Positions 3,001-47,708 of a stretch of 64,000 nucleotides of DNA are shown in pieces (position 1 is the stretch's first letter; every line of letters begins with the position of its first letter). The stretch is from contig JAHLTZ010000011.1 of NCBI GenBank assembly GCA_025786725.1, positions 186,001-250,000 on the forward strand. The letters run 5' to 3'. Position numbers and translations under genes: made by a program. The DNA comes from Syncephalis fuscata S228 (Eukaryota > Fungi > Zoopagomycota). The notes beneath the pieces were generated by a model. That model was not told the DNA's origin and did not search any database. It worked only from the letters and a program-made list of their open reading frames with translations.

Positions 3001-4238
3001 TCGCCATGTTTGATAGTAGCCCATTTTGCTTTCTGGCAATCCTGGTGCCATCTAATGGAACGATATCAATAGCTGTTCATGTTATCTGTACTAACCAACT
3101 TACCCAAGGTAATATACAACGCACAGCATGGACCAGATAAGGTACAATTGTAGTGACACCTTCAAGATCTGCTGCCAATAACATGTCACCCTCAGATAAT
3201 AATGCGGGAATGGAACAGCGTGTTTGAGAAGACTAGATAGACAAATAGTAACATAGCAGACGAGTTAGATATCAATGCTAATTCAAATAGCCATACTATA
3301 ATACCTCAACAATAATCTGGTAAAAGCGCTGCAGATATTCATTGCCCAAACGTGTACGCCGTTGAGGTGCCGAGAATACACGACATAGTGCACCAAGAGC
3401 AATCATTTTACCTTCAATTTGTCTATATAGCATAAGATAATGTCATTAATAGATAGTAAATTACTTACCGTGGATCTTGCCAACGAGTCGAACACACGTC
3501 AAATAGCCATGTACCAAATAGTCTAAAAATAGTATTACCATCAGGTGGTAATGGATTACCCGGCTATTTAATAGTCATAATAATGGTAAATATTTAATAA
3601 CATCTGTATTGTATACTATATATTACCGTTTTAATAGGATCAGAACTTGCACCTCCTACTACAATAAATGTTTTTATAATACGTGCAATTCCCTAATTTG
3701 CTTATTAATACTTCATAATACACCATCTACTATAGTCATCTAACTTACATGGAATGCCTTTTCAAAGTTATGTGGCTGTAATCGACAAGGATCTCCAATC
3801 ATATCTAAATATGGTTAATTATTACTTAATACCACCAATTACTTATTAATAGCTTACTAAGGGTTCTCACCCAAATAGGTAGTAAAAGATTCTCTGTTGG
3901 ATCCAATCGAATCATAGCTGAATTGCTATTACATATTAAATAGCATCGTTTAATAATAAGATGAACTAATAGTATAAATTTACTTACGCTGTTACTTCTA
4001 TACATGATGTACCAGCACCGGGTCCATAAAGAATACGTAGAATACGTTGTGTCATAGCATAGCTATAAACACACCAATTATCAATGACTCGAGCACGATG
4101 TGCCCAATGAGGGAATGCATCCTAATGATCCATATTCGTATCAATCATAGTGACATATGTTAAATACTTACAATTAAGTAATCTGTTAATTCAGCATCAT
4201 AAGATGGTGCTCTTAACAATAATTCGAATAATGTCTAT

Positions 4239-4297
<59 letters not shown>

Positions 4298-5457
4298 CAT
4301 TAGTAATTATTATAGTATAGTATATATAACTTACTTGAATTAAACTCTCGCATAATTCACCGGCTAAATCATATACTTCTGGAATAATACCGGCGGCCAT
4401 TAACTCTGACCGTGTCTCACCACCAGTTACTCCCGTATTTGAATTACTATAATTCATATTATGTACACTGCCGCCTGCACTGTTTAGTGTCTCTATAGGA
4501 TGACCTGTTGCGTGGTTGGCTGCTAGTGTTTCCATAACGGCAGGCATACGAAGTAATCGATCACAGGCTCCACTAACAACACGTATAAGCACGCGCCAGG
4601 TACTTTCACTCATTTCACCGGTCAGTAAACGACCAGCCATCGTGAACATCTTCAATACTTTACGGCATAGCTCAGCATATTCACGAAATGCACTCGATCG
4701 ATCCTGTACCTCCGAGGAAGTATGTGTTGCCGCATTGGTATTCGTGGTATGTGTACCCGATGTACCGGTCAGTGGTGGATCCATAACAATACCAATGTTT
4801 GTATTATTCTCTGACATAGAGAATACACTTGTACCAGAGGGTGATACAGGTGCCGGTGTTGTGGGATGGCCCGATGGATGATCATGAAATGATCTTGGTT
4901 CAAATAATTGTGATAAATGACGAAATAGTGTCTATTAATAAATACATGAATATAAATATATATGAATATTAACATTATAATTATTAATCAATCGATTTAC
5001 ACTTACTTGAAGGAATTGTTGTGATTGGATGCCTTCCTTTGTATCTTCAGTATCAATACTTCGATAGCACTCGGGACGTGCATTGCGTTCAAGTAGCCAT
5101 TTACTATAAATATCGGCTGCATCATTCATCAATGCACTGTCCGCGTAGGAAGGCAGGGCAAATACTTGTCCAATGGCGGCCATACACCATCGGGCCTGTG
5201 CCACTGTTGTTATCCTCGGTGCGGGCTGTGCGGACTTTGACGTAAATGTCGATAAAGGTGGTGCCAAGTACGTGGTCACTAAACGAACAGCCGCCCGTCG
5301 AAAACTAAGTTGACAGTCAGAAAGTGCATCAGAATCTAAATAGATTAAGTATTTAAATGTCTATTAATAACATTTTTTCAATATATTTATTAGTGTTCAG
5401 CCTACCACTATCCGTTATGGGCAGTAAACCCATTTCAGTTATCCATTCTAGTTGCAT
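1..5457 (-). CDS. RALGAPB: Ral GTPase-activating protein beta subunit-like (RalGAPB); multi-exon (~20 introns), 3' end beyond window start
   Basis: ATG at 5457 (MQLEWITEMGLLPITDS). Spliced exons give 'VAQARWCMAAIGQVFALP', 'TWRVLIRVVSGACDRLL', 'PHWAHRARVIDNWCV', 'PDGNTIFRLFGTWLFD', and Rap-GAP-like 'VSIYYA...EFDRFLGSLG' near 700-820. These match RalGAPB-family motifs as I recall them. GT-AG introns with branch points; at least one indel near 300. Confidence 0.8.
4240..4296. repeat. (AAT)n microsatellite inside a RalGAPB intron
   Basis: Perfect AAT run; it explains the poly-Y tail of ORF 4239..4817. Confidence 0.95.
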
Positions 5458-6180
5458 GATGACCACACGTGGCCTACTGGTTATTATGCCACGTTATGTC
5501 TGTAATCTGCTGCTGCTGCTGTTGTTGTTGTTGTTGTTGCTATATACTAGTACCATAAAAGATGACAAGTCAATAGTAATAAATCAATGCTTGGTATTCA
5601 ACTGGACAGTATCCAGTCTACTTTGACAAATAATACGCAATAATGATATAAAAATAGAGGCCACAGTTATTGCCACAGACCCAGATTATGTGTGCACGAC
5701 GCGTTTCTACTAGATTGTCGATGCTACTAGATACTATGTAGGAATGACAAATAGCAATTATAAAATAGGTATCAAACAATAATAAGTTGATAATAGCCAA
5801 GAATCAATAGGAATACGAATAGAGTTATAATAGAAAAGAGAAGCGATATCGATTATTGATCAAGTACAAAGGTCTGGCTGCTCAAAGTTCAACACCGCGT
5901 GATAATTGTCTACTCAAGGTTACGCTAATGATGCAGACCGGTTTTACACTCTGTCCTGGTCAAAGTGTTTTAAATAATAGTTGAAATATTATTAATAGTC
6001 TTCATTTCTCTTTATATATACACACACAGTATTTACCAACATTGTACTTTCATCTTTATTACCGTTATTACTCTATTATTATACTACTACTAGCTGTTTC
6101 TCTATCTATCTTGACTATTAGTGTTTTATTTAGTTCATCTAGTTCCAACTACCTACATTGAGTAGCTGTCGTTTATAAAT

Positions 6181-6759
6181 ATGTTTAGAATGCGCTCTTT
6201 TATCATTGCTTTGATGTTGCTAATGGCTGCAGCTGTTCCCCTTGTCCAAGCCGACTGGCAAATAACCTCGCTTAGTACTGGAGATCGTGAACATATATGT
6301 GCCCAGAATATGGCTTACTGTTTTAATAACTGTAACGGTAAAGCACCTATGAATTTCTGTAATACTACTACTATGGGCTGGAACTGTGGATGTGCTGATA
6401 AAACACCTGATCTTGCTGACTATCAATGGCCGATTGTACGTGCCGAGTGTAGTGGCCGCTTTAATCAATGTCAACTGAAATGTCAAAAGGATCCCGTCAA
6501 AATGATAGAATGCAGCACCAAGTGCAGCGATACCTATAAGTGTGATTATGGCAAAATGCCACCTTCTAATCTCCGTGTAAAAAGTCCATCTAGTGTTCCT
6601 GATTATACTGGTGTTGTGGTTTCTAGTAATAGTAATAATAGTAGTAGTAGCAGTAGCAAGGATTCAAATAATGCCAATAGCCTACTATGTTCTCTCGCTC
6701 CATTATCTTACACTGCTGGTGCGCTGATGGTTGTTGTTGGTGCTATATTGACCCTTTAA
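6181..6759 (+). CDS. Secreted, probably GPI-anchored Cys-rich cell-surface protein (DUF7707-like)
   Basis: Intronless 192 aa. Signal peptide (..AVPLVQA|DW), 12-Cys domain, Ser/Asn-rich linker, C-terminal hydrophobic GPI-type tail. Confidence 0.8.
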   Translation: MFRMRSFIIALMLLMAAAVPLVQADWQITSLSTGDREHICAQNMAYCFNNCNGKAPMNFCNTTTMGWNCGCADKTPDLADYQWPIVRAECSGRFNQCQLKCQKDPVKMIECSTKCSDTYKCDYGKMPPSNLRVKSPSSVPDYTGVVVSSNSNNSSSSSSKDSNNANSLLCSLAPLSYTAGALMVVVGAILTL

Positions 6760-7570: not shown

Positions 7571-8722
7571 ATGATATTTCAAAGCGCACGTACTTTTATC
7601 GCTGTCACTATGGTCACTGTTGCTGCAATGATGTTGATGTCGACGTTGAATAACGCCGTAGAAGCAGTCCAGCAAACTCCAAGTGTTGTACTAGCTCGAA
7701 ATGGAGAAATGGGCTTTGATAAGAGTATGTATAATTACGATTATTATAGCAATTATAAAATTCTAATTAAACAGCTACAGATGACAATACATTTTACGGA
7801 TATTCAATTAAGCAGCCAGGCATGTTCAATGATCCCAAATTTGCAGTCACCTACATTGGCAATGGAAATGTGGATGCAGTTTACGACAATACGCCAGTAC
7901 GAGTTCGCTGTGATACTATCAATCGTTCTGAACAGATACTGCGATTTAATGGATTCAACAATATAACTCTTTTAGTGCAAGAGGTATGTTACATTGACTA
8001 GATAGACTACCATGACTAATAATATGATTGAGCATAGAGTTGCTTAAAATGGAGTTCCAATACTCCTCAAGAAATAAAAGATAAAGAAATCATTGGGTGT
8101 CCTATAAGGACTTATCATATAAAGCGCACACCGCAAGAACCGTATCCCACAAATGACAATATGCATTGCCATCTTGTTAGGCATCGCACTTCGCCAAATG
8201 ATTATGGCAAGTGGCCTTTCGACCCACGTTTTGCCAAGGACACCTCGGTCATCAATGACCGTATCAGTAAGCTTGTTTCGCAGATAACCGATGCTAAAGT
8301 TCTTATCGATATATTAAACCAAATTCAGCAAGGCACGTAAACACTAATTATAAAGTAAATTATGGCTAACTTGCTACACATTAGGCATGCTTTTTATGAG
8401 AAAATTAAAATGGTACTACGGATTAGCTAAAGGTAGGCTGATTTGGAATCTATACTATGAGTGTAGTGCTGACTATTTATAAGATGACGGTTTGGACTGT
8501 GGCTCTACTGGATGCAAAGTTAGATTTCATCTATGGGGAACTGTAGTTCCTACTACATTCAAGGATATCAAGCCTGAAAACAAAAACCGCGTTATTACAG
8601 AACTGAATACTAAAAATCATCAACTTATTTCCACATTTTATACACACTTGACTGGACAAGAACGCGTATTAGTCGAGGCAAAAGTTAAAAATGTTTTGGC
8701 TGCTATAATGATTATTGTATAA
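7571..8722 (+). CDS. Secreted protein with degenerate protein-kinase-like features (pseudokinase-like), 5 exons
   Basis: Signal peptide (..LNNAVEA). Introns 7725-7780, 7984-8037, 8333-8384 (GC-AG) and ~8432-8483 join one open frame: ...VRVRCD...ILNQIQQGMLFMRKLKWYYGLAKDDGLDCGSTGCKVRFHLWGT... The kinase relationship is inference. Confidence 0.65.
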
Positions 8723-9096
8723 GCCAGTTGAATTCACAATGCACTTTCAACACTGCAAACGGAATAAAGCATATTTTTAATGTTGAAATTATTGTTTATA
8801 CTCAATATTGCATTAGCACTTTAGTAAATAATGTTGTAAGCAAATATAGGATTTACTGTTTTAAACAGTATAACTACTTTATTACTTGTAAATCCACTTA
8901 TATCCACGTCCACACGCACGACTGTCCTTTTGCTCTTCCAGTAATACTATAGACGTACAATAGTAATGAATGTAGGATCTATTAGAATTATACACAGTTA
9001 ATAAATTGTTCGAATTAACAAATTTAAAGTAATAGCAAGTATTATCAATTAAAACACAAGTGTTACAAGATAATTGAGTAAAATGATTTAATTACT

Positions 9097-9990
9097 TTAT
9101 ATTGTATTATGGCGATTACACTGTTGAACTGCTTCTAGCAATCCTTGAGCACTAGGCGATTTTGCCACGGCATCAACACGAATACCAGCCGAAGAAAGTG
9201 CCGCTGCTGTTGTTTGACCGATAGCTGCAACTCGCCACACAGCACACTCCTCTGCTAAGTGCTGCTCATCGTGTTTCTTAATATAAATAGGAATTGTAGT
9301 AAGATAAGGTAGAGCAATATTAGCACCTGATGGACTAAAGAAAGCAAGCCAATTAGTGCCAGTGTTATACTGTAGCATAGCTGTAGAAGCAAGTTTGAGT
9401 TGCGTCGCTAGTTGTGCGTCCTCGCCAACAGCATATACAGCCAATTCCTGGAACGGACAAGCTGCTGCTGCTAAACGTCGTGGCAGTGTATTGCGCCGCT
9501 GTTCGCCCGATAGAAATAGCAGTGTTTTAGCTGTCGTCGTCGTTGTTGTTGTTGACCAAGTATCGATAATCACATCAGCAAGTCCTTCGGCCTCTCCGGC
9601 AGGCGAGCCTAACGATTCCACACCTAGCATTGTTTGTAAGGTAGCTGCAGTGCTAGGACCTACGGCAAACCATACAACCGTCCGCCACCAACGTAATAAA
9701 CTATCGCTATCATCGAGACGCGATAATACTTGCGCAAATGCTTTAACTGCACGCTTACTCGTTACAACGACACCCCAATGCTCGGCCGTCTTAGGTACTT
9801 CCTGAACAAGTCGTGCTAATTCCCCTTCAGCAATCCATTGATCAGCTAATGGTGCAATACATTGTACTTGTTCGAAATGGTTCGTAAATTCACGTATATA
9901 AACATCTTTTTCTGTACAAGACCCGTCATCTGTCGAACGACGTAGTAATAAAATACGCAAAGTCATGGGATAAAAGGTAACTAGTGCCAT
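9097..9990 (-). CDS. HEM4: Uroporphyrinogen-III synthase
   Basis: Intronless 297 aa with HemD motifs VVVTSKRAV, FAVGPSTA, LLFLSGE, AFFSPSG, AAIGQTTAAAL, VAKSPS. Confidence 0.93.
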   Translation of the reverse strand: MALVTFYPMTLRILLLRRSTDDGSCTEKDVYIREFTNHFEQVQCIAPLADQWIAEGELARLVQEVPKTAEHWGVVVTSKRAVKAFAQVLSRLDDSDSLLRWWRTVVWFAVGPSTAATLQTMLGVESLGSPAGEAEGLADVIIDTWSTTTTTTTAKTLLFLSGEQRRNTLPRRLAAAACPFQELAVYAVGEDAQLATQLKLASTAMLQYNTGTNWLAFFSPSGANIALPYLTTIPIYIKKHDEQHLAEECAVWRVAAIGQTTAAALSSAGIRVDAVAKSPSAQGLLEAVQQCNRHNTI

Positions 9991-10254
9991 TTAATGTTGA
10001 ATCGATTTTATCACGTAACATCTACTTTGCATCTCCCACTTCAACGCAGCAAAACTTTTTACGCTATCAATCGTAATGATTTGAGTAATTAACGTTGAAA
10101 TCATTATTCACAATAAACATTAAAGCAATGTTATTGTCCATTATAATTTCCATAAAACAGAATTAATTATAACATAAAATTGTGTCAGTAATAATATTAA
10201 ACATTTAAATAAATAATGTAACATACTATTTGATTTCTTTGGAACATTTGACAT

Positions 10255-10862
10255 CAATTATTATTGTTGTTAGTCATGTGTACAAAATTGATCGAATATT
10301 AATAAAAGTCATTGGTCATGATTCCATGTCATTCCATATTAATTGTTGTTGCATCCATGTACAATATGGACTATTGCATCTAAATGATCTTTTTTATTTT
10401 TCGACCTTTTACTGTTGTGTTTTAAGCATATTTGCAATGTAAGATACTTATCTATGGCGACAAGAAGGTAGAAAGACTAGCGTTTCTGATGTTCACCATT
10501 GTTTTGAGCATTGTTGGTATCAACTTGGTAGAAGCAGATTATTTGCCAACCATTGATGAAGCAAATAACTTTCACCATATGCAATAATGATAGGTTGAGT
10601 GTCTTTACCAGGAAGATTTTGTAGCGACAGTTGTAATCAGAATATACGGCATGCCGTTGAGGTTACTTGAACAGGTGTTGATGCAAAATAAGAAAATAAA
10701 GACTAGGGATTAAATAGTGTTTTTATTGATGTTCAAATAGGCATGTTATTTATATTGTTATATTCAGCATTATCGGATAATATAATACTGAATAGAAAAA
10801 TAAAATGGCAATAGAAAAAGAAAGTGAAATGAATAAATAAAAAATGTGGAGTCAAGGTAAAA
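10255..10862 (+). repeat. ~610-bp direct repeat, copy 1 (copy 2 at 14301..14911)
   Basis: Both copies start CAATTATTATTGTTGTTAGTCATGTGTAC and align throughout with scattered substitutions (roughly 90% by eye). Confidence 0.95.
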
Positions 10863-11159
10863 ATGACATGACCATATAAATATTATGCGCTCAATCCAAT
10901 GTTTTGTTTTATTTTAATATGTAGCTATACAGCTTTTATTAATGAGCAATAAATAAAATTAATGTGTCTTTCTATTGTTGCAATAATGTATAATATTAGC
11001 TGTTTACTCTAATAAATAATTAGATTAAGCCTTATAATAGTTGGCTTAGTTGGTGGTCGTGTAAATGTGTGTATATAAATGGTTACAATGTGATTGTAAA
11101 TATTTATCCGCACAAACAACCAGAATTACAATTATAGCGACAATAATAAGCTATTTAAC

Positions 11160-12132
11160 TACTAAACGCATTTATTTAATTTATTTACATTTCTCTGTTT
11201 TCTGTGTATTATCTTGGTTTAACGTTGTTGCTGTTCTAATCGCATCCGCAACGACCAACTTTTGATAAATGTAGTTCAGCTTAGCATAGCTATAATGATT
11301 TGCCATAGGTTAAACCAGTAAGCCTTTGAGATGCCAATTGTTTTTTCATTGGTTTCTGCTTTGGCTTGTTCTCCTATATTCTATCTTACTTGCCTTGTCA
11401 GAAATGGTTTCAGAAATGTAAGCAGCACTTAGGCCTTAGATGTTTACCAATTGATATGCAACCCATTGCTATTATGCATTTGAATTGCTGATATTTGATT
11501 AGAATGTCTATTGTGTTTAACTAGTGTCTGCATATTGTATTGCGCGTAGTTTAGCCAATGCAATCTAGTTTACAGCTGAAAACTGATGACGAAAATGACA
11601 TGTTGGAATGTTCTATTGCTCAAAATGCTGTGATGCATCATCCTACAAATAGTACTCATTGTATAATCAATTTCAGGTGATTTGGATTAACCGCCATTTG
11701 AATGATGGTAGTTGTACAACATGTGGCACAATATGCCTGGGTGGTATGATGCATTTGTGAATTCAAAACAATGATTAGCCCATAAAATGGGCATAGTGTC
11801 GAATGAAATGCACGCATGTACCAATCAATATACTTTATAATCTAAAATTACGACTGACCTATGTATAGCAATAAAAACTTGTATAAAATACCAGTTTAAT
11901 ACATTAAACTTGTTTTGCATCAGTGCTGAGTGCTATTCTGTATGCAACAGATATTGAGGACCGAATCGGTAGAAATGGCAGCAAATACATCGTTATCGTT
12001 TTACAAAGCCAAACAATATACTTGTTTTTACCAAATAGTTAGACTGTGAAACAAAAAACACAGAACGGTGTACATATTTCTATTGTATATGCACTGCTCA
12101 TTGGGATTGCTGCGTCATTTGTGTAAATGCTG
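11160..12132 (+). repeat. Diverged duplicated segment, copy A-left (paralog ~30670..31678)
   Basis: Shared blocks such as AATGCTGTGATGCAT, CACGCATG(T/C)ACCA, CAGATATTG and GTAAATGCTG occur in the same order; about 65-70% identity by eye; no intact ORF. Confidence 0.75.
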
Positions 12133-12218
12133 AGAAGATTGAAGTAAAACCAGGCAGGTTGAAATCAAGGCCGAACAGGTTGAAATCAAGACTGGGCAGG
12201 TTGAAATCAAAGCTAAGA
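12131..12218 (+). repeat. 21-bp tandem repeat (CAGGTTGAAATCAA core x3), reading as the heptad QVEIKxx
   Basis: CAGGTTGAAATCAAGGCCGAA / CAGGTTGAAATCAAGACTGGG / CAGGTTGAAATCAAAGCTAAG, preceded by a degenerate unit. Confidence 0.85.
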
Positions 12219-12357
12219 AGCATACTATTACATTCCCAATCTATTAATATACACATACACCTTAAACCATTTTTGGGTTTACTTTATTGGTTCATATTGT
12301 ATATCAATGGTATACCTCGTGTGCTACAGTATACTAGTATCTCAACATAGCTGTAAG

Positions 12358-12365
12358 TATAAATA
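12358..12365 (+). promoter_or_regulatory. TATA box of the small secreted-peptide gene
   Basis: TATAAATA ~140 nt upstream of ATG 12501, followed by a CT-rich leader and an ATCACC-ATG context. Confidence 0.55.
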
Positions 12366-12500
12366 GCTTGCAAAATATACACAACCAACTGCAATATCAT
12401 CATTACACTCTACTTCTTGCTATACACACTCTACTCTCCACTATACCAACCACACTCTACTATTTCTTTTATTTGCTTGTCTTAACAAATTAATATCACC

Positions 12501-12671
12501 ATGAAGCTTTCCATTGCCGTCGTTTGCACCGTCGTTGTGGCTTTGACAGCCGCTACAACCATGGTTGATGCTAAACCAACCATGGTAGATGATAAACCGG
12601 TCATGGTGAATGATAAAGCAACTTTGGTTGGTCGTGGTTGGAAGCCATGTTGGCCAAGACCGTGGTGTTAA
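12501..12671 (+). CDS. Small secreted prepro-peptide (56 aa); predicted mature peptide GWKPCWPRPWC
   Basis: MKLSIAVVCTVVVALTAATTMVDAKPTMVDDKPVMVNDKATLVGRGWKPCWPRPWC*. Signal peptide, heptad-repeat pro-region, Arg site, 2-Cys Trp/Pro-rich C-terminus. GC-richer than its flanks; below the ORF-track length cutoff. Confidence 0.85.
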   Translation: MKLSIAVVCTVVVALTAATTMVDAKPTMVDDKPVMVNDKATLVGRGWKPCWPRPWC

Positions 12672-12683
12672 CCACAATTGACA

Positions 12684-13060
12684 GTTTCAAGACATCAGCA
12701 TTGGTAGTGCAATCAAACCACTAGTCCAATACACTATAGGTATATATTCGGTGAAAATCAAGACCATTTGACAACTACGCCGTCCAGTCTATTTATATAT
12801 CAAGTTTTGGCCAATGCTCCGGTTTAGCCAGTCTTTAATCAATGGAATCATTATTTTATCAACAGGCTTGCAATTAGTTGTTTCTATTCAACTGTGCAAG
12901 CTTATAGTAATAAATTTATGGTTCCATCTTAACTATATCTATAATCATGTTCTATTTGCATCCAATAATTGCCAATATTAATCAAATAGTTAAATTAACA
13001 AACTGTGTATGATTATATCATGTAAGCTATAAGCATATATTAGTATGGATAGTAGCAAAG
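12684..13060 (+). repeat. Duplicated segment, copy A-right (paralog ~32206..32610)
   Basis: For example TTTAATCAATGGAATCATTATTTTATCAACAGG and TAGTTGTTTCTATTCAACTGTGCAA are identical in both copies. Confidence 0.9.
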
Positions 13061-14300
13061 CTATTATTATCCTATAACCAAATAATAGTATGCTGAAATT
13101 AGCATAAATATGTTTTTTAATAAAACATGGTAACAAAGTATAGGATATTATAAAACAAAATAAATAGACAAATCAAGTACGTGAATAGTGATAACAAAAC
13201 TATACTGTATGCAATTGACCAAGAGTGATGAACAAATAAATTAAAATCTACTAAAAGAATGCAGTTAGCAATAAACTTTTAGCTTTTATTAGTATAGCTT
13301 TTACAGTTTACAATATTAATTATATACACGGACATATGGTATATGTATACAGGATAGATATGTACAGTGCAATAATAATGATAAATAAATAGTTTATCAC
13401 CATTGACACTCACTACCCAATTTCATCAACAATAAAACGAATTGTTGATTTAAATGCGTAACTATTATAGTTATTTAACTGCCAAATCACATTAAACAAC
13501 CAATAATATACTTAATATTGTTGAAAAGTTATTTTTATTTAGTTAATAAAGATATCATAAGATTTAATACAAATCAAGTGGTTTAAATAATCCGCCACAG
13601 CACCCTCTTAAGCTTCTTTGCCATGTTCCACGACTTTTCTAAATTATGACACTGGAACAACTATCGTAATGTTTAGGAATGGATGCTAAAAGTAAACTGT
13701 TCTAGTTTGCCAATGATAAATGCCATGTTGACGGCATTATTTTGCATATCTTCACTCTTGCTTGATACACCAACCAATTAATTTGAGTTGATCAAAGCAA
13801 TAATACTTTTATGTAATTCGGAATTAATTAATTGCTATATCTGATAATTGAAACGCTCTAAACCAGTCTGATTTTATTTGTTAATTAAATTTAAATTTAA
13901 AAAATATTTATTAGCTAAATCATTTTTATTTTACATTACACTTTCTTCATCTTGATAGCTGTTTTAACTACTAGTTCAATACTATTAATACTAGTTTTAC
14001 ATATTATATTTTTGTATTGTATTTGTTAGTTGCATTTGCCACCAATATATTGTTGGACATATTTTGGCAAATAGAACACGATCGGCATTACTGTTAATAT
14101 TGCTACAATTAACTAAATTACGTAAATAAAGTTTAGATTAAATTTGTTGTATTATTGTGATTATTTTTTCAAAATCCCAATTCTACTTTAAGTCTCATAT
14201 TTGAGTTTTCTAAGCAAATCGGTTTCAATTGAAAACATGTTGTCATGCACAAGAAACATAGTTATAATGTTTTATTTAACTACTTTGAAATTTATGAGGC

Positions 14301-14911
14301 CAATTATTATTGTTGTTAGTCATGTGTACAAAAATTGATCGAATATTAATAAAAGTCATTGGTCATGATTCCATGTCATTCCATATTAATTGTTGTTGCA
14401 TCCATGTACAATATGGATTATTGCATTTGAATGATCTCTTTTATTTTTCGACCTTTTACTGTTGTGTTTTGAGCATATTTGCAATGTAAGATACTTATCT
14501 ATGGTGACAAGAAGGTAGAAAGACTAGCGTTTCTGATGTTCACTATTGTTTTGAGCGTTTTTGGTATCAACTTAATAGGCGCAATTACTTTGCCAACCAT
14601 TAATGAAGCAAATGACCTTCACCATATGCAATAATGATAGGTTGAGTGTCTTTACCAGGAAGATTTTGTGGCGACAGCTGTAACCAGAATATACAACATA
14701 CCGTTGAGGTTACTTGAACAGGTGTTGATGCAAAATAAGAGAATAAAGACTAGGGATTAAATAGTGTTTTTATTGCTGTTCAAATACGCATGTTATTTAT
14801 ATTGTTATATTCAGCATTATCGTATAATACAATACTGAATAGAAAAATAAAATGGCAATAGGAAAAAAACTGTGAAATGAGTAAATAAAAAATGTGAAAG
14901 CCAAAGTAAAA
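14301..14911 (+). repeat. ~610-bp direct repeat, copy 2
   Basis: Aligns to 10255..10862. Confidence 0.95.
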
Positions 14912-28467: not shown

Positions 28468-29837
28468 ATGGTTGCCAGACAATTGAAACAAAGTCGTTTT
28501 GCGAAACGAGGACCGCAATCCATTATATTTATTATATTATTAGCGTTGCTAATAGAAATACATTAGTATCAAATGTATCGGTGTTGGCCATCGATTTTGA
28601 TACGGTAGAGTCGGATCAGACTACTGAGACAGCTCCAGTAGTACTGAATATACCAAGCCCATCTTTTGGTAAACGGCCTGTCACTAAACCGGCACCATCT
28701 GCTAAATCATCGCCTGTAGGACCGAGTAATCAATCGCAGTTTTGTGCCTCAGAGTTTGCTATTACCAATCTTCATAAATGTGCTAAATTTGAGTTTTCCT
28801 ATGATAGTACGGTTGGTAAAGATGAGCCATGTGTTGCTACCGCATCGACCAATCTTACTGAGCTTAGCTTTCCTGCACCGGATCCGGAGCTGGCTAATAT
28901 GCCGATCAATAGACTGACACCATCAGTTCGTCGTATTATTGAAGGTATTACGAATACATTCGAAAACGGTACACCTGATTATGCTTATGGCAAATGTGAA
29001 CATCTGGATGATGGTCGTGGCTACACTTGTGGCCGTATTGGATTCACTACTGGTACCGGTGATGCGCTTTGGGTGGTTGAAAAATACGTTAAATATAGAC
29101 CCGGTGTTACACTTGCTCGTTACTTGCCGGAATTACGCCGACTTGCGGCGTTGCCAAGCTGTGATACTACTGGTAAAGAGAATATACATAATTTAAACGG
29201 ATTTGCAGCAGCATGGTCGGCGGCCAATCAGCGCGATACTGCTCTATTTCGTCAAATTCAAGACAATATTGCTGAGCAGCATTATTTAATACCAGCACTA
29301 AAGTTTGCTCATAAATACGGAGCAACTACTGCGTTAAGTCAAGCAGTATTTTACGATACGGTTGTTCAGCATGGTTATGCCTCTACCGAGGATAATATAG
29401 ATTTACAACGCATATTAACACTAACCGGTCCGCGACGCACTGGAGAAACTGAGATAGGTTGGCTTGATCGCTTTTTGGTTACACGGGGCCAAATGCTTTG
29501 CTGCTTCCCCGATAGTGTATGGCCAGCGTCAGCCGACCGCGTTCACGATTTACGTGATCTACTTAGCCATGGAAAAGTAAACCTTACTGGTGAAATTACT
29601 TTAAGGTCAAGCGGCATTCAAATCCTCGCTGGTAGCGATGAATTTGCCGCTGATGCACGATCAAGTGCCATTAAGATTAAAAAGCCATCTCGTCATACTG
29701 CTTCAAAAAAAGCATCAGCATTGGCTATACAATATAGGCCCAAATCGGCCATTAAATTAAAGCCATTAGTGCGTCAACCAAAGCAGACACGTACCAAGTT
29801 GGCTCGTCCTACACAAGCTATTTCTCTACTTCATTAA
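28468..29837 (+). CDS. Secreted chitosanase, glycoside hydrolase family 46
   Basis: ITNTFENG (catalytic Glu) and EHLDDGRGYTCGRIGFTTGTGD (catalytic Asp), YLPELRRL, FYDTVVQHG. Signal peptide from ATG 28468 requires one indel ~28557; basic C-terminal tail; intronless. Confidence 0.9.
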
Positions 29838-45512: not shown

Positions 45513-47708
45513 TTAATAACTGCTGGCTAATTTGCCCAAGGTATCTTTAATAGAGTTGATGGCAGCCTGGTCTGTTGGAAGGTTTTTTAGTGCTGGAACG
45601 CTGTTGGCCAAATCAAGAACTGGTGCCTTAATAGCATCCACTACTGGCTTTACCTCTTCTTCACAGTCTTCGTAGACGTCCTCCTCTTCTTCACAATCTT
45701 CCTCTTGAGCCTTCAATGTAGCCAAAGATTGGGACAGTGGTACCCAGCCTTTGCTAAAGTCACGAATAGCAGAGATTTCAAAGTTGGCGGCAGAAGTAAG
45801 CGAGATACCAGCTTGCTTAGGAGAGCCAATGATTGAGGTCAACTTATCAACGATGGTAGAAGGATTGAGTAGCTTGGAGACAGAGCTCAATGGGCTATTT
45901 GTAACGTAGCTGGCGACCATATTACGAATATTGCTGACGGCATCCTTAACAGTGGCGGAGTTGGTGCTATTGAGAACAATTGGGACACGTTCAGTACCAA
46001 ATCCGGCTGTGAAATCCTTTTTTCCTGCAGCCACAAGTTTGGAGATGACATCACCACGATTGGCCAAAGCGCAAGAGGATACATAGCCGTGAATAGAATT
46101 GATCTTGTCATAGACTTGAGTTTTGAATTGGCTTTCACGCTCGCGTGTTTTATTGACCGATTGGAAATTCATGATCATCCATTCTTCTTTAATTGGTGGT
46201 GGCATACGAAGCTTGGTGAGTGAGTCGCGGTTATTGCCTTCTGGAGTAATAGGAGCATTGTTGATGGGGACATTGGTTGCTGGTGGAGTAGAGCCATACG
46301 CAAGCTTTTCTTTTTTGCATGCACAAGGATCGACAGAAGTAGCAGGAGCAGGAGCAGCAGCAGGAGGAGAGGCAGGAGCGGCAACAGAATAACTACGGCG
46401 TACCAAACTATTATTATCTTGATGATTGAAGCGAGAACCAGCGTTACTAAACCAGTTATTCCATGTTTCTTGCCAATTATTGTTATTCTGTTGTTGTGGC
46501 TGTTGAGTAGCAGGCTGTGGCTGTTGAGTAGCAGGCTGTGGCTGTTGAGTAGCAGGTTGTGGCTGTTGAGTAGCAGGCTGTGGCTGTTGAGTAGCAGGCT
46601 GTGGCTGTTGAGTAGCAGGTTGTGGCTGTTGAGTAGCAGGCTGTGGCTGTTGAGTAGCAGGTTGTGGCTGTTGAGTAGCAGGCTGTGGCTGTTGAGTAGC
46701 AGGTTGTGGCTGTTGAGTAGCAGGCTGTGGCTGTTGTTGTTGCGGCTGCTGTGATGTCTGGCTTGAAGCAGGAGTAACTGGACCTTCTACCTTATCGGCT
46801 GGTAGATCTCCATAGGTATAGCAAAGTGCTTTGGTATCAAACATTGCCTTGACTGGAAGATCATTCCATGGCTCCAGTAGAATATCAGGTGTTGCTTGTT
46901 GGCCATTTCTTAGTTGACCACCAAAGGCCCTAAAGTTTTCTGGACGAGCCATCTGCCATTGCCACCATACACGATCCACCATACCGTGATGCATGAAAAA
47001 AAGTGGATCACCTGGGCTGTACATATTAAACATACCACCACCAATACCATTGTGCACACGGGCGTGGTATGTACCTTCTATGTCGAAAGAAAATTTGCTA
47101 AATTCATTATGGTCGGTAATGGACTTTTGCACAGCTTCGGGCGAGTAGAAGGCACCAATCTCATTACCAAAGTCAAAGGTACGACGAAGACAGTTTGGAG
47201 TTGGATAGTAGGGACGCCAGTTGGCGAATGGACCATCAGTAACACAGCCGCCTTCTTTACCGTTACCGCCAAAGTATTCGGGAGTGAATACGACGGATGT
47301 TTCTGGAGCTTGAGAATCAATACACGTGTCCCAATAAGGAAGCATGATATCAGGATAAATTTGTTGCAAATCTATTTCCAATTCACGCAACATACGACGA
47401 TGCCATGGTAAGAATAAAGGTGAGTTGTGGGCAATAGGTGCCATATCGTTGTGCAACTTTGCAAAAGAATCGTAGCGTGTTGGAGCAGGGCCAGACTGTA
47501 GTCTGCGCAGTCCATCTATAAAGCGCTGACGTTCATTAACAGAAAGAGTACGAATTTCACGACGCTCACGAACACCATTAGGACATCTATTAGGAACAAT
47601 ACGCCCAGGTTCATCTACGGGAGCTGCAGCGCCGACGAGTCCTGCGTCGGATGCTACCGTGGCTAGCGTTGCTGCCACAGTAAATAGCAGAAAGGTGGAG
47701 TACTTCAT
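45513..47708 (-). CDS. Secreted tyrosinase (type-3 di-copper protein)
   Basis: Signal peptide; RREIRTLS; CuA H..AHNSPLFLPWHR; CuB YHARVHNGIGG..SPGDPLFFMHHGMVDRVW; LCYTY motif; Q/P linker; C-terminal domain. Confidence 0.95.
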   Translation of the reverse strand: MKYSTFLLFTVAATLATVASDAGLVGAAAPVDEPGRIVPNRCPNGVRERREIRTLSVNERQRFIDGLRRLQSGPAPTRYDSFAKLHNDMAPIAHNSPLFLPWHRRMLRELEIDLQQIYPDIMLPYWDTCIDSQAPETSVVFTPEYFGGNGKEGGCVTDGPFANWRPYYPTPNCLRRTFDFGNEIGAFYSPEAVQKSITDHNEFSKFSFDIEGTYHARVHNGIGGGMFNMYSPGDPLFFMHHGMVDRVWWQWQMARPENFRAFGGQLRNGQQATPDILLEPWNDLPVKAMFDTKALCYTYGDLPADKVEGPVTPASSQTSQQPQQQQPQPATQQPQPATQQPQPATQQPQPATQQPQPATQQPQPATQQPQPATQQPQPATQQPQPATQQPQPATQQPQPATQQPQQQNNNNWQETWNNWFSNAGSRFNHQDNNSLVRRSYSVAAPASPPAAAPAPATSVDPCACKKEKLAYGSTPPATNVPINNAPITPEGNNRDSLTKLRMPPPIKEEWMIMNFQSVNKTRERESQFKTQVYDKINSIHGYVSSCALANRGDVISKLVAAGKKDFTAGFGTERVPIVLNSTNSATVKDAVSNIRNMVASYVTNSPLSSVSKLLNPSTIVDKLTSIIGSPKQAGISLTSAANFEISAIRDFSKGWVPLSQSLATLKAQEEDCEEEEDVYEDCEEEVKPVVDAIKAPVLDLANSVPALKNLPTDQAAINSIKDTLGKLASSY
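46495..46735 (-). repeat. 21-bp coding minisatellite, 11 copies encoding QPQPATQ
   Basis: GCTGTTGAGTAGCAGG(C/T)TGTG repeated 11 times. Confidence 0.95.

Follow-up and report, generated by a model that had tools for sequence, protein, structure and literature searches.

The open reading frame (ORF) at positions 12501-12671 of this stretch raises the question of whether it is a gene and, if so, of what kind and with what history. The initial annotation saw in it the precursor gene of a secreted 11-residue peptide resembling the contryphans of cone snails. The window, i.e. the whole stretch of 64,000 nucleotides from Syncephalis fuscata that was analysed, carries at this locus the following features (L002 and similar designations refer to paralogous loci):

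10046-12598, +, upstream arm of a duplication, with a ~2.4-kb block, the promoter and most of the exon-1 equivalent (blastn)
12358-12366, +, TATA box TATAAATAG, read in the sequence and identical in L002 and L003
12420-12500, +, 5'UTR, start approximate (depth and starts of public-run contigs)
12501-12572, +, putative signal peptide, codons 1-24, MKLSIAVVCTVVVALTAATTMVDA, the family leader (11 invariant columns in an alignment of 24 paralogs; cleavage site read from the sequence)
12573-12635, +, pro-region of three 21-nt heptads, KPTMVDD/KPVMVND/KATLVGR (TRF, alignments)
12636-12668, +, predicted mature peptide GWKPCWPRPWC (translation, alignment)
12637-12672, +, twelve phase-1 triplets where paralogs have 3-nt exons (colinear with the joined L002 micro-exons)
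12669-12671, +, stop codon TAA
12673-12930, +, 3'UTR, equivalent to the last exon, end approximate (homologous to the last exons of L002 and L006 from their acceptors)
12684-14445, +, downstream arm of the duplication, extending well beyond the transcript end (blastn)
12909-12914, +, AATAAA within the 3'UTR

Translation of 12501-12671 (+) gives an uninterrupted ORF of 56 codons that ends with GWKPCWPRPWC and matches exactly the intronless ORF described initially. The TATA box, CT-rich leader and start context noted at that time are all present in the sequence, the CT-rich leader being followed by ATCACC ahead of the ATG, with an A at position -3. Likewise, the pro-region made of 21-nt heptads is underlain by a repeat of 21-nt period that TRF detects in 3.6 copies at 12556-12630. 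The gene is indeed unannotated, its protein being absent from two protein searches that returned 15 annotated relatives. The N-terminal part looks like a signal peptide, with Lys2, a hydrophobic core of 18 residues and V-D-A before the proposed cut (Val at -3, Ala at -1), and would be cleaved after VDA (Ala24). Hence, the proposal of a signal-pro-mature precursor missed by gene callers, in an early-diverging fungus that parasitises Mucorales, stands.

A leader family in Syncephalis fuscata

Six-frame searches of the species' own 29.4-Mb assembly with the leader (residues 1-29 to 1-40) gave at least 150 scored matches and 282 candidates; the tail of the ORF was never matched in the same genome search. 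The loci that were fetched share the layout MKLSIAVVC...MVDAKP...ALVRR followed by very different ends, which are Cys-rich peptides of 25-45 residues, short Trp-rich peptides or, in many cases, 'ORFs' that stop early. These early stops follow RR-G-M-F or RR-G-M-L-Q, that is, an intron donor (G|GTATGT) read as codons. The leader of our gene is 68-89% identical to the leader segments of paralogs and 51-58% identical to full-length annotated proteins. Furthermore, family members are 80-96% identical to our gene in the upstream and promoter region and 83-99% identical over the 3'UTR (12676-12938). The ORF at 12501-12671 thus appears to be no chance ORF, since its leader recurs in the genome and its promoter and 3'UTR are conserved among paralogs. 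The initial annotation had anticipated paralogs with conserved leaders and variable cores containing two Cys: the conserved leaders and variable tails were found, and the Cys pair is missing in some relatives.

The 61 fetched loci yielded a sample of 57 distinct genes. Common to the family are the promoter block, the 5'UTR, the signal peptide, a short pro-region with a basic end and the 3'UTR, and the mature peptide ranges from 9 to about 40 residues. Our gene has the leader, the upstream block and the 3'UTR of the family and lacks its array of 3-nt exons. As judged from these data, the family would comprise several hundred genes encoding secreted peptides, so far found only in S. fuscata. Two very large protein collections contain only 15 annotated proteins with this leader, all of them named 'hypothetical protein BDF19DRAFT' and all from S. 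fuscata, so that gene annotation is poor (15 protein models for ~280 loci). In the NCBI S. fuscata models P0005 and P0006, tails such as RKLYCILTDYALI are the translated repeat intron AAGTTGTATTGTATATTAACTGACTATGCACTAATT. These models read through introns and do not splice the 3-nt exons. A search of the Syncephalis literature for this family or its layout returned no description. The family is a large, almost wholly unannotated repertoire of highly transcribed, fast-changing small peptides that are probably secreted.

Most paralogs have a single pro-heptad, KPALVRR, and L002 lacks the middle heptad of our gene. In our subclade, the extra heptads resemble duplicated copies whose RR was turned into DD or ND. 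The Arg said to precede the 11-mer is present, with the caveat that the site is Gly-Arg (LVGR) where most paralogs have Arg-Arg (family consensus LVRR). L002 also has LVGR, which indicates that the change to Gly-Arg predates the loss of introns described below.

Some intronless members encode six-Cys peptides. L012, L013, L014 and L019 form near-identical intronless pairs, GN[SR]AECQKCMHECM[IV]FCKIRCKPKCQS, arranged head to head ~760 bp apart on two contigs (G000:C146 at ~125 kb and C347 at ~4-5 kb). The presence of this pair on two contigs results either from an inverted duplication or from haplotig redundancy.

Upstream of our gene, ~2.4 kb (window 10100-12500) are 80-87% identical among family members. 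Direct repeats of ~610 bp flank the gene (10255-10862 and 14301-14911), and 521 candidate copies of this piece were detected genome-wide, typically located 1.6-2.7 kb upstream of family genes and in the same orientation. The recurrence of the ~610-bp piece together with the conserved block suggests that the peptide genes multiply within a unit of at least 3 kb, which may be a mobile element or a co-duplicated regulatory block. The two ~610-bp repeats were also considered as LTRs of a retroelement, which could account for the intron loss. This seems unlikely, since the piece forms the 5' portion of the family upstream block and lies ahead of many family genes; moreover, homology with the twin gene L002 begins 209 nt before the piece and LTR-type boundaries were not found.

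Codon-sized exons and an intron-free twin

The mature part consists of tandem ~80-nt introns parted by 3-nt exons in 33 of the 57 sampled genes, the intron-free form being found in the other 24, ours included. Downstream of exon 1, the repeat has a period of ~83 nt, corresponding to an ~80-nt intron, GTAAGTTG...CACTAAT...AATATTAATAG (GTAAGT...ACTAAT...AATAG), plus three variable bases, and the micro-exons are in phase 1. A profile of the intron rests on 806 units across the 61 fetched loci, with up to about 35 units per gene; exons within the arrays are mostly of 3 nt and at times of 6 nt. Within the unit, variability peaks in the three exon columns (1.84 bits; mean of the intron columns, 0.74 bits), as expected if they hold hypervariable coding information. 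The following arrays were resolved into exons and predicted peptides:

L002, exon 1 + 14 exons of 3 nt + last exon (15 introns): ALEPCWRPRRPLWCP
L006, exon 1 + 9 exons of 3 nt + last exon: ARCSWPIKC, with the stop codon made across the last junction
L009, exon 1 + 9 exons of 3 nt + last exon: SCKYWWDCV
L010, exon 1 + 10 exons of 3 nt + last exon: APWGGFRWF

A CAT exon with the same distinctive intron is present twice inside L002, which indicates that arrays grow by unit duplication. In addition, intron 9 of L002 carries a ~400-bp insertion (L021 7203-7600; G000:C13 about 179203-179600) with copies of a ~17-nt intron segment, AAGTTGCATTATATATTA, on either side; one of its ends is T-rich and the other G+C-rich. 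This insertion looks like a SINE-like retroposon in antisense orientation; ARAGORN found no tRNA in it.

The closest precedent for this gene layout is the NACHT-ANK (NLR) superfamily of Tuber melanosporum, for which dozens of tandem 3-bp mini-exons are described and are proposed to diversify the recognition surface (Iotti et al. 2012, as cited in PMC9815663). As far as this secondary account goes, the layout is that of L002 and of the 33 array genes of our sample. The truffle genes encode intracellular immune receptors of an ascomycete, whereas the arrays of this zoopagomycete specify small secreted peptides, whose entire mature part they encode, and our gene is the form from which every intron has been removed. 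A literature search found no paper on such arrays for secreted peptides or on their intron-free twins. In the micro-exon genes (MEGs) of Schistosoma, secreted products are likewise assembled from numerous very short symmetric exons, an arrangement that may permit variation. The schistosome micro-exons measure 6-36 nt, and the introns between them are not known to derive from a single repeat unit, unlike the 3-nt exons and repeat-unit introns described here, and we know of no intron-free twins of MEGs.

L002 (G000:C13:178413) is a copy located 20 kb upstream of our gene. According to blastn, the window is 96.2% identical to the fetched stretch L021 over 2557 nt upstream (10046-12598 against 3990-6510) and 99.3% identical over 1767 nt downstream (12684-14445 against 8234-10000, up to the end of the fetched stretch). 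Thus, the duplicated segment measures at least 4.4 kb, and 85 nt lie between the two arms in our copy versus 1723 nt in L002. The equivalent of the exon 1/intron 1 junction is between 12636 and 12637, exon 1 of L002 ending at the same G (...GGTCGTG). From there, our gene reads in phase-1 triplets GTT GGA AGC CAT GTT GGC CAA GAC CGT GGT GTT AAC, and the pieces of L002 are CTC TGG AGC CAT GTT GGC GGC CTC GGC GGC CAT TGT GGT GTC. Triplets 3-6 are identical, and spliced L002 is colinear with our gene, since an equal score is reached by only one of 2000 random reorderings of the L002 triplets. After the triplets, our gene continues in homology with the last exon of L002 from its acceptor. The predicted peptides GWKPCW-PR-P-WC and ALEPCWRPRRPLWCP appear visibly related. 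Hence, the initial annotation overlooked the main point: the intronless state that it recorded is exceptional among family members, and the gene has a twin made of 3-nt exons.

Relative to its sister gene, our copy precisely lacks all introns, as in a processed copy. The classical marks of retroposition (transcript-bound homology, poly(A) tail, target-site duplication) are missing: there is no poly(A) tail, and homology extends beyond the transcript, over 2.4 kb upstream and at least 1.5 kb downstream. Insertion at a new site is ruled out on both counts. The homology past the transcript instead argues for a cDNA recombined with a resident copy, and so precise a disappearance of 13-15 introns, sparing promoter and flanks, bears the signature of recombination with the reverse transcript of a spliced mRNA. 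The cDNA recombination model of reverse-transcriptase-mediated intron loss, reportedly due to Fink in 1987, involves likewise the precise loss of several introns together with promoter and flanks kept; here, the 13-15 introns were each 3 nt apart, were lost in a recent duplicate and have left an intron-bearing twin next door.

We therefore favor the following history. A segment of at least 4.4 kb would first have been duplicated, the twin 20 kb upstream keeping its 15 introns. Our copy would then have lost all its introns at exact boundaries, most likely through recombination with cDNA made from a spliced mRNA, the donor of this mRNA being the gene itself or a near paralog absent from the assembly. 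Divergence between the twins is raised over 12599-12683, a stretch that takes in the extra heptad as well as the first 12 nt of the part matching the last exon. A conversion tract copied from a near paralog's cDNA could explain it; alternatively, it reflects fast change after intron loss. Genome searches found no array carrying GTT-GGA-AGC or CAA-GAC-CGT with GTAAGT donors and no second copy of the 111-nt mature segment in the assembly, which indicates that no such paralog is in the assembly. Our gene would in effect be a natural cDNA fixed in the genome, in which the 3-nt pieces appear joined as predicted. Independently of RNA data, it would thus show that the spliceosome of S. fuscata joins 3-nt exons lying ~80 nt apart, an extreme case for models of splice-site recognition. 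The twin pair is also an unusually clean and recent case of many introns lost together and offers material for studying the manner and frequency of gene rewriting by reverse transcription. The interest of the locus thus seems to lie in the history of the gene, i.e. a recent, complete and precise loss of introns from a codon-per-exon gene whose twin is preserved. The contribution of this locus is the twin pair and its phylogenetic nesting.

Transcripts and direction of change

Assembled contigs of four public runs (X1-X4), which by nature do not show expression level, strand or transcript ends, were compared with the locus; X3 is a soil metatranscriptome recorded as RNA, and X1 (organism A) and X2 (organism B) are only guessed to be RNA. 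In X2, the family 5'UTR with leader and the 3'UTR reach a summed depth of 10^5 to 6.7x10^5. Depth is ~40 in the upstream flank, climbs from ~40 to more than 10^4 between 12373 and 12440, and falls to ~0 past about 12950. This pattern suggests that the library is transcript-shaped and the family extremely abundant in it, and the mRNAs of family peptides may be among the most abundant transcripts of this sample. Among the 18 M contig letters of X2, 503 contigs match the leader or 3'UTR (window 12441-12576 and 12679-12900). One X2 mRNA end (...ALVRR-DSCET) corresponds to a 30-mer that was found in the genome neither contiguous nor split as ATT|CAT|GCG; in eight genes, intron 1 leads from exon 1 to an ATT micro-exon. 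X2 may come from another strain or species.

The contigs of X1, X3 and X4 start at 12441-12473, one X1 contig reaching ~63 nt further upstream, and contig cover ends at 12929-12950; these three runs gave no cover outside about 12441-12950. A 268-nt contig of X1 spans 12580-12847 without gaps, with an unchanged coding part and four differences, all in the 3'UTR. It thus contains no indel that would turn the ORF into the start of a longer protein, a possibility raised initially. A 149-nt contig of X3 spans 12648-12793, i.e. the last eight codons, the stop and 3'UTR, with six differences, of which at least three are in the 3'UTR. Since these two contigs carry the coding part or its end, an mRNA with our coding end therefore exists in at least two samples other than the sequenced strain. 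In X2, no contig covers 12611-12678, the part unique to our gene, whose segment 12637-12672 is single-copy in the genome. Our copy may therefore be weakly expressed or silent in that sample.

This gap in X2, in spite of the enormous abundance of the family, is one reason to ask whether our gene is a dead or dying processed copy, which would have lost its introns but would not be expressed or processed, so that GWKPCWPRPWC is never made. The Gly-Arg site that replaces the Arg-Arg of paralogs points in the same direction, and decayed copies exist elsewhere in the family (a truncated copy in L022 and the loss of the second Cys in L011). However, the ORF, the TATA box, the start context and the AATAAA are all intact, the Gly-Arg site is shared with L002 and is therefore older than the intron loss, and the X1 and X3 contigs contain the unchanged coding part and the last eight codons with 3'UTR, respectively. 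We thus consider a dead copy unlikely.

The opposite direction of change was also considered, the intron-free form being ancestral and L002 and the other arrays having gained introns later. The unrooted tree of the 57 distinct genes, built from 450 nt upstream and 95 nt of coding sequence, has intronless Cys-rich clades among its deep branches, and arrays clearly grow by duplication of units, as the repeated CAT exon of L002 illustrates. However, our gene and L002 are sisters (100/100) nested with strong support in a clade of array genes (L003, L009, L011), and the intronless state requires at least seven changes on this tree, six of which are forced by well-supported branches. Moreover, the flanks of the twins differ by only 0.7-3.8%, and 15 gains in phase 1 at successive codons are far less likely than a single reverse-transcription event. 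The same pattern recurs in a second pair, formed by the intronless L004 (APWDFDGFGR) and L010: once spliced, L010 is colinear with L004, and the two agree in their first three triplets and at the beginning of the last exon. Intron gain by the arrays is therefore very improbable.

Taken as a whole, the account of a single-exon family member that was duplicated, lost its introns through spliced RNA and would encode a secreted effector or antimicrobial peptide appears probable. A wider reading, which we offer only tentatively, is that codon-sized exons set in an intron repeat would form an engine of peptide variety, whose variants are sometimes frozen by reverse transcription. The present pair would then represent the before and after states at ~1-4% divergence, and the intronless Cys-rich members would be older frozen products. 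If so, the duplication, loss or mutation of one unit would alter one residue.

The predicted peptide

The product of our gene would enter the ER co-translationally, its signal peptide being cut after Ala24. The pro-region would then be cut after Arg45 by a Kex2-like protease, at the weaker Gly-Arg site. GWKPCWPRPWC would thus be released and secreted with a Cys5-Cys11 disulfide closing a ring of five internal residues. The release of exactly this 11-mer would be the weakest step, since the site (KATLVGR) is monobasic and a Kex2-like enzyme should cut it less well. Kex2-processed fungal peptides (KEPs) and alpha-factor-like precursors have the same succession of a signal peptide, a pro-region with a basic end and a short peptide. 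Our precursor differs from them in holding one peptide without repeats and a Gly-Arg site instead of Lys-Arg or Arg-Arg, and no family relation to them was detected.

Contryphans undergo post-translational hydroxylation of Pro and L-to-D epimerisation of Trp or Leu. The loop of our peptide, C-W-P-R-P-W-C, has the same length as theirs (five residues) and the same PWC end, and its precursor has the same signal-pro-mature layout. On these grounds, the peptide had been taken for a disulfide-cyclised toxin standing by itself, either convergent with contryphans or akin to them. However, the contryphan motif is CO(D-W/D-L)XPWC-amide (PMC5100318), to which our peptide does not conform: motif positions 2 and 3 are swapped, with W-P in place of Hyp-D-Trp, and, as the initial annotation correctly remarked, it has no C-terminal Gly for amidation. 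A Pfam search with our protein gave no hit at E values up to 10, conotoxin families included, and a search of PDB sequences gave no significant match to any solved chain. Every relative found through the leader is from S. fuscata, which places the precursor outside the conotoxin superfamilies. Furthermore, the loop is not kept in sister genes, being of eight residues in L002 and L003 and of five in L006 and L009, with no Cys pair in L010, L004 and L011, and PWC is absent from most sister peptides. One such string is expected among several hundred variable peptides rich in Trp, Pro and Cys. The loop and the PWC end that were noted initially are thus real, but the peptide is one variant of a hypervariable family rather than a special toxin, and the stand-alone reading can hardly be sustained. 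The likeness to contryphans therefore seems to be due to chance or loose convergence within this set, not to kinship, and homology is refuted as far as sequences can show. Like the conotoxin superfamilies, this large family pairs a conserved signal peptide and pro-region with a hypervariable mature peptide; it belongs to another kingdom, and shows no sequence homology with them.

S. fuscata is an obligate haustorial parasite of moulds (Mucorales, Mortierellales). The peptide would have an extracellular role and be one among the parasite's many fast-changing effectors or antimicrobial peptides. Such a role would fit much better than that of a pheromone, given the several hundred genes, the hypervariable mature part, the conserved leader, the abundance of transcripts and the parasitism of moulds. 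A mating pheromone precursor, to which a short secreted peptide rich in Trp, Pro and Cys and cut from a precursor might correspond, is the least probable reading of all, since ~280 hypervariable genes with very high transcript abundance are unlike a pheromone system and the precursor has neither a multi-copy cassette nor a CAAX motif. The peptides of the family are hence candidate effectors or antifungals, and a disulfide-looped 11-mer rich in Trp and Pro is cheap to synthesise.

Elsewhere in the window, the ORF 28581-29837 (+) encodes a protein with a Pfam domain of glycosyl hydrolase family 46 (chitosanase; E 2.5e-42). The walls of Mucorales are rich in chitosan and GH46 is mainly a bacterial family; this chitosanase is a plausible weapon of a parasite of Mucorales. 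In addition, the ORF 45513-47708 (-) encodes a tyrosinase domain (E 1.4e-36) and includes at 46495-46736 a 21-nt tandem repeat of 11.5 copies with 96% identity.
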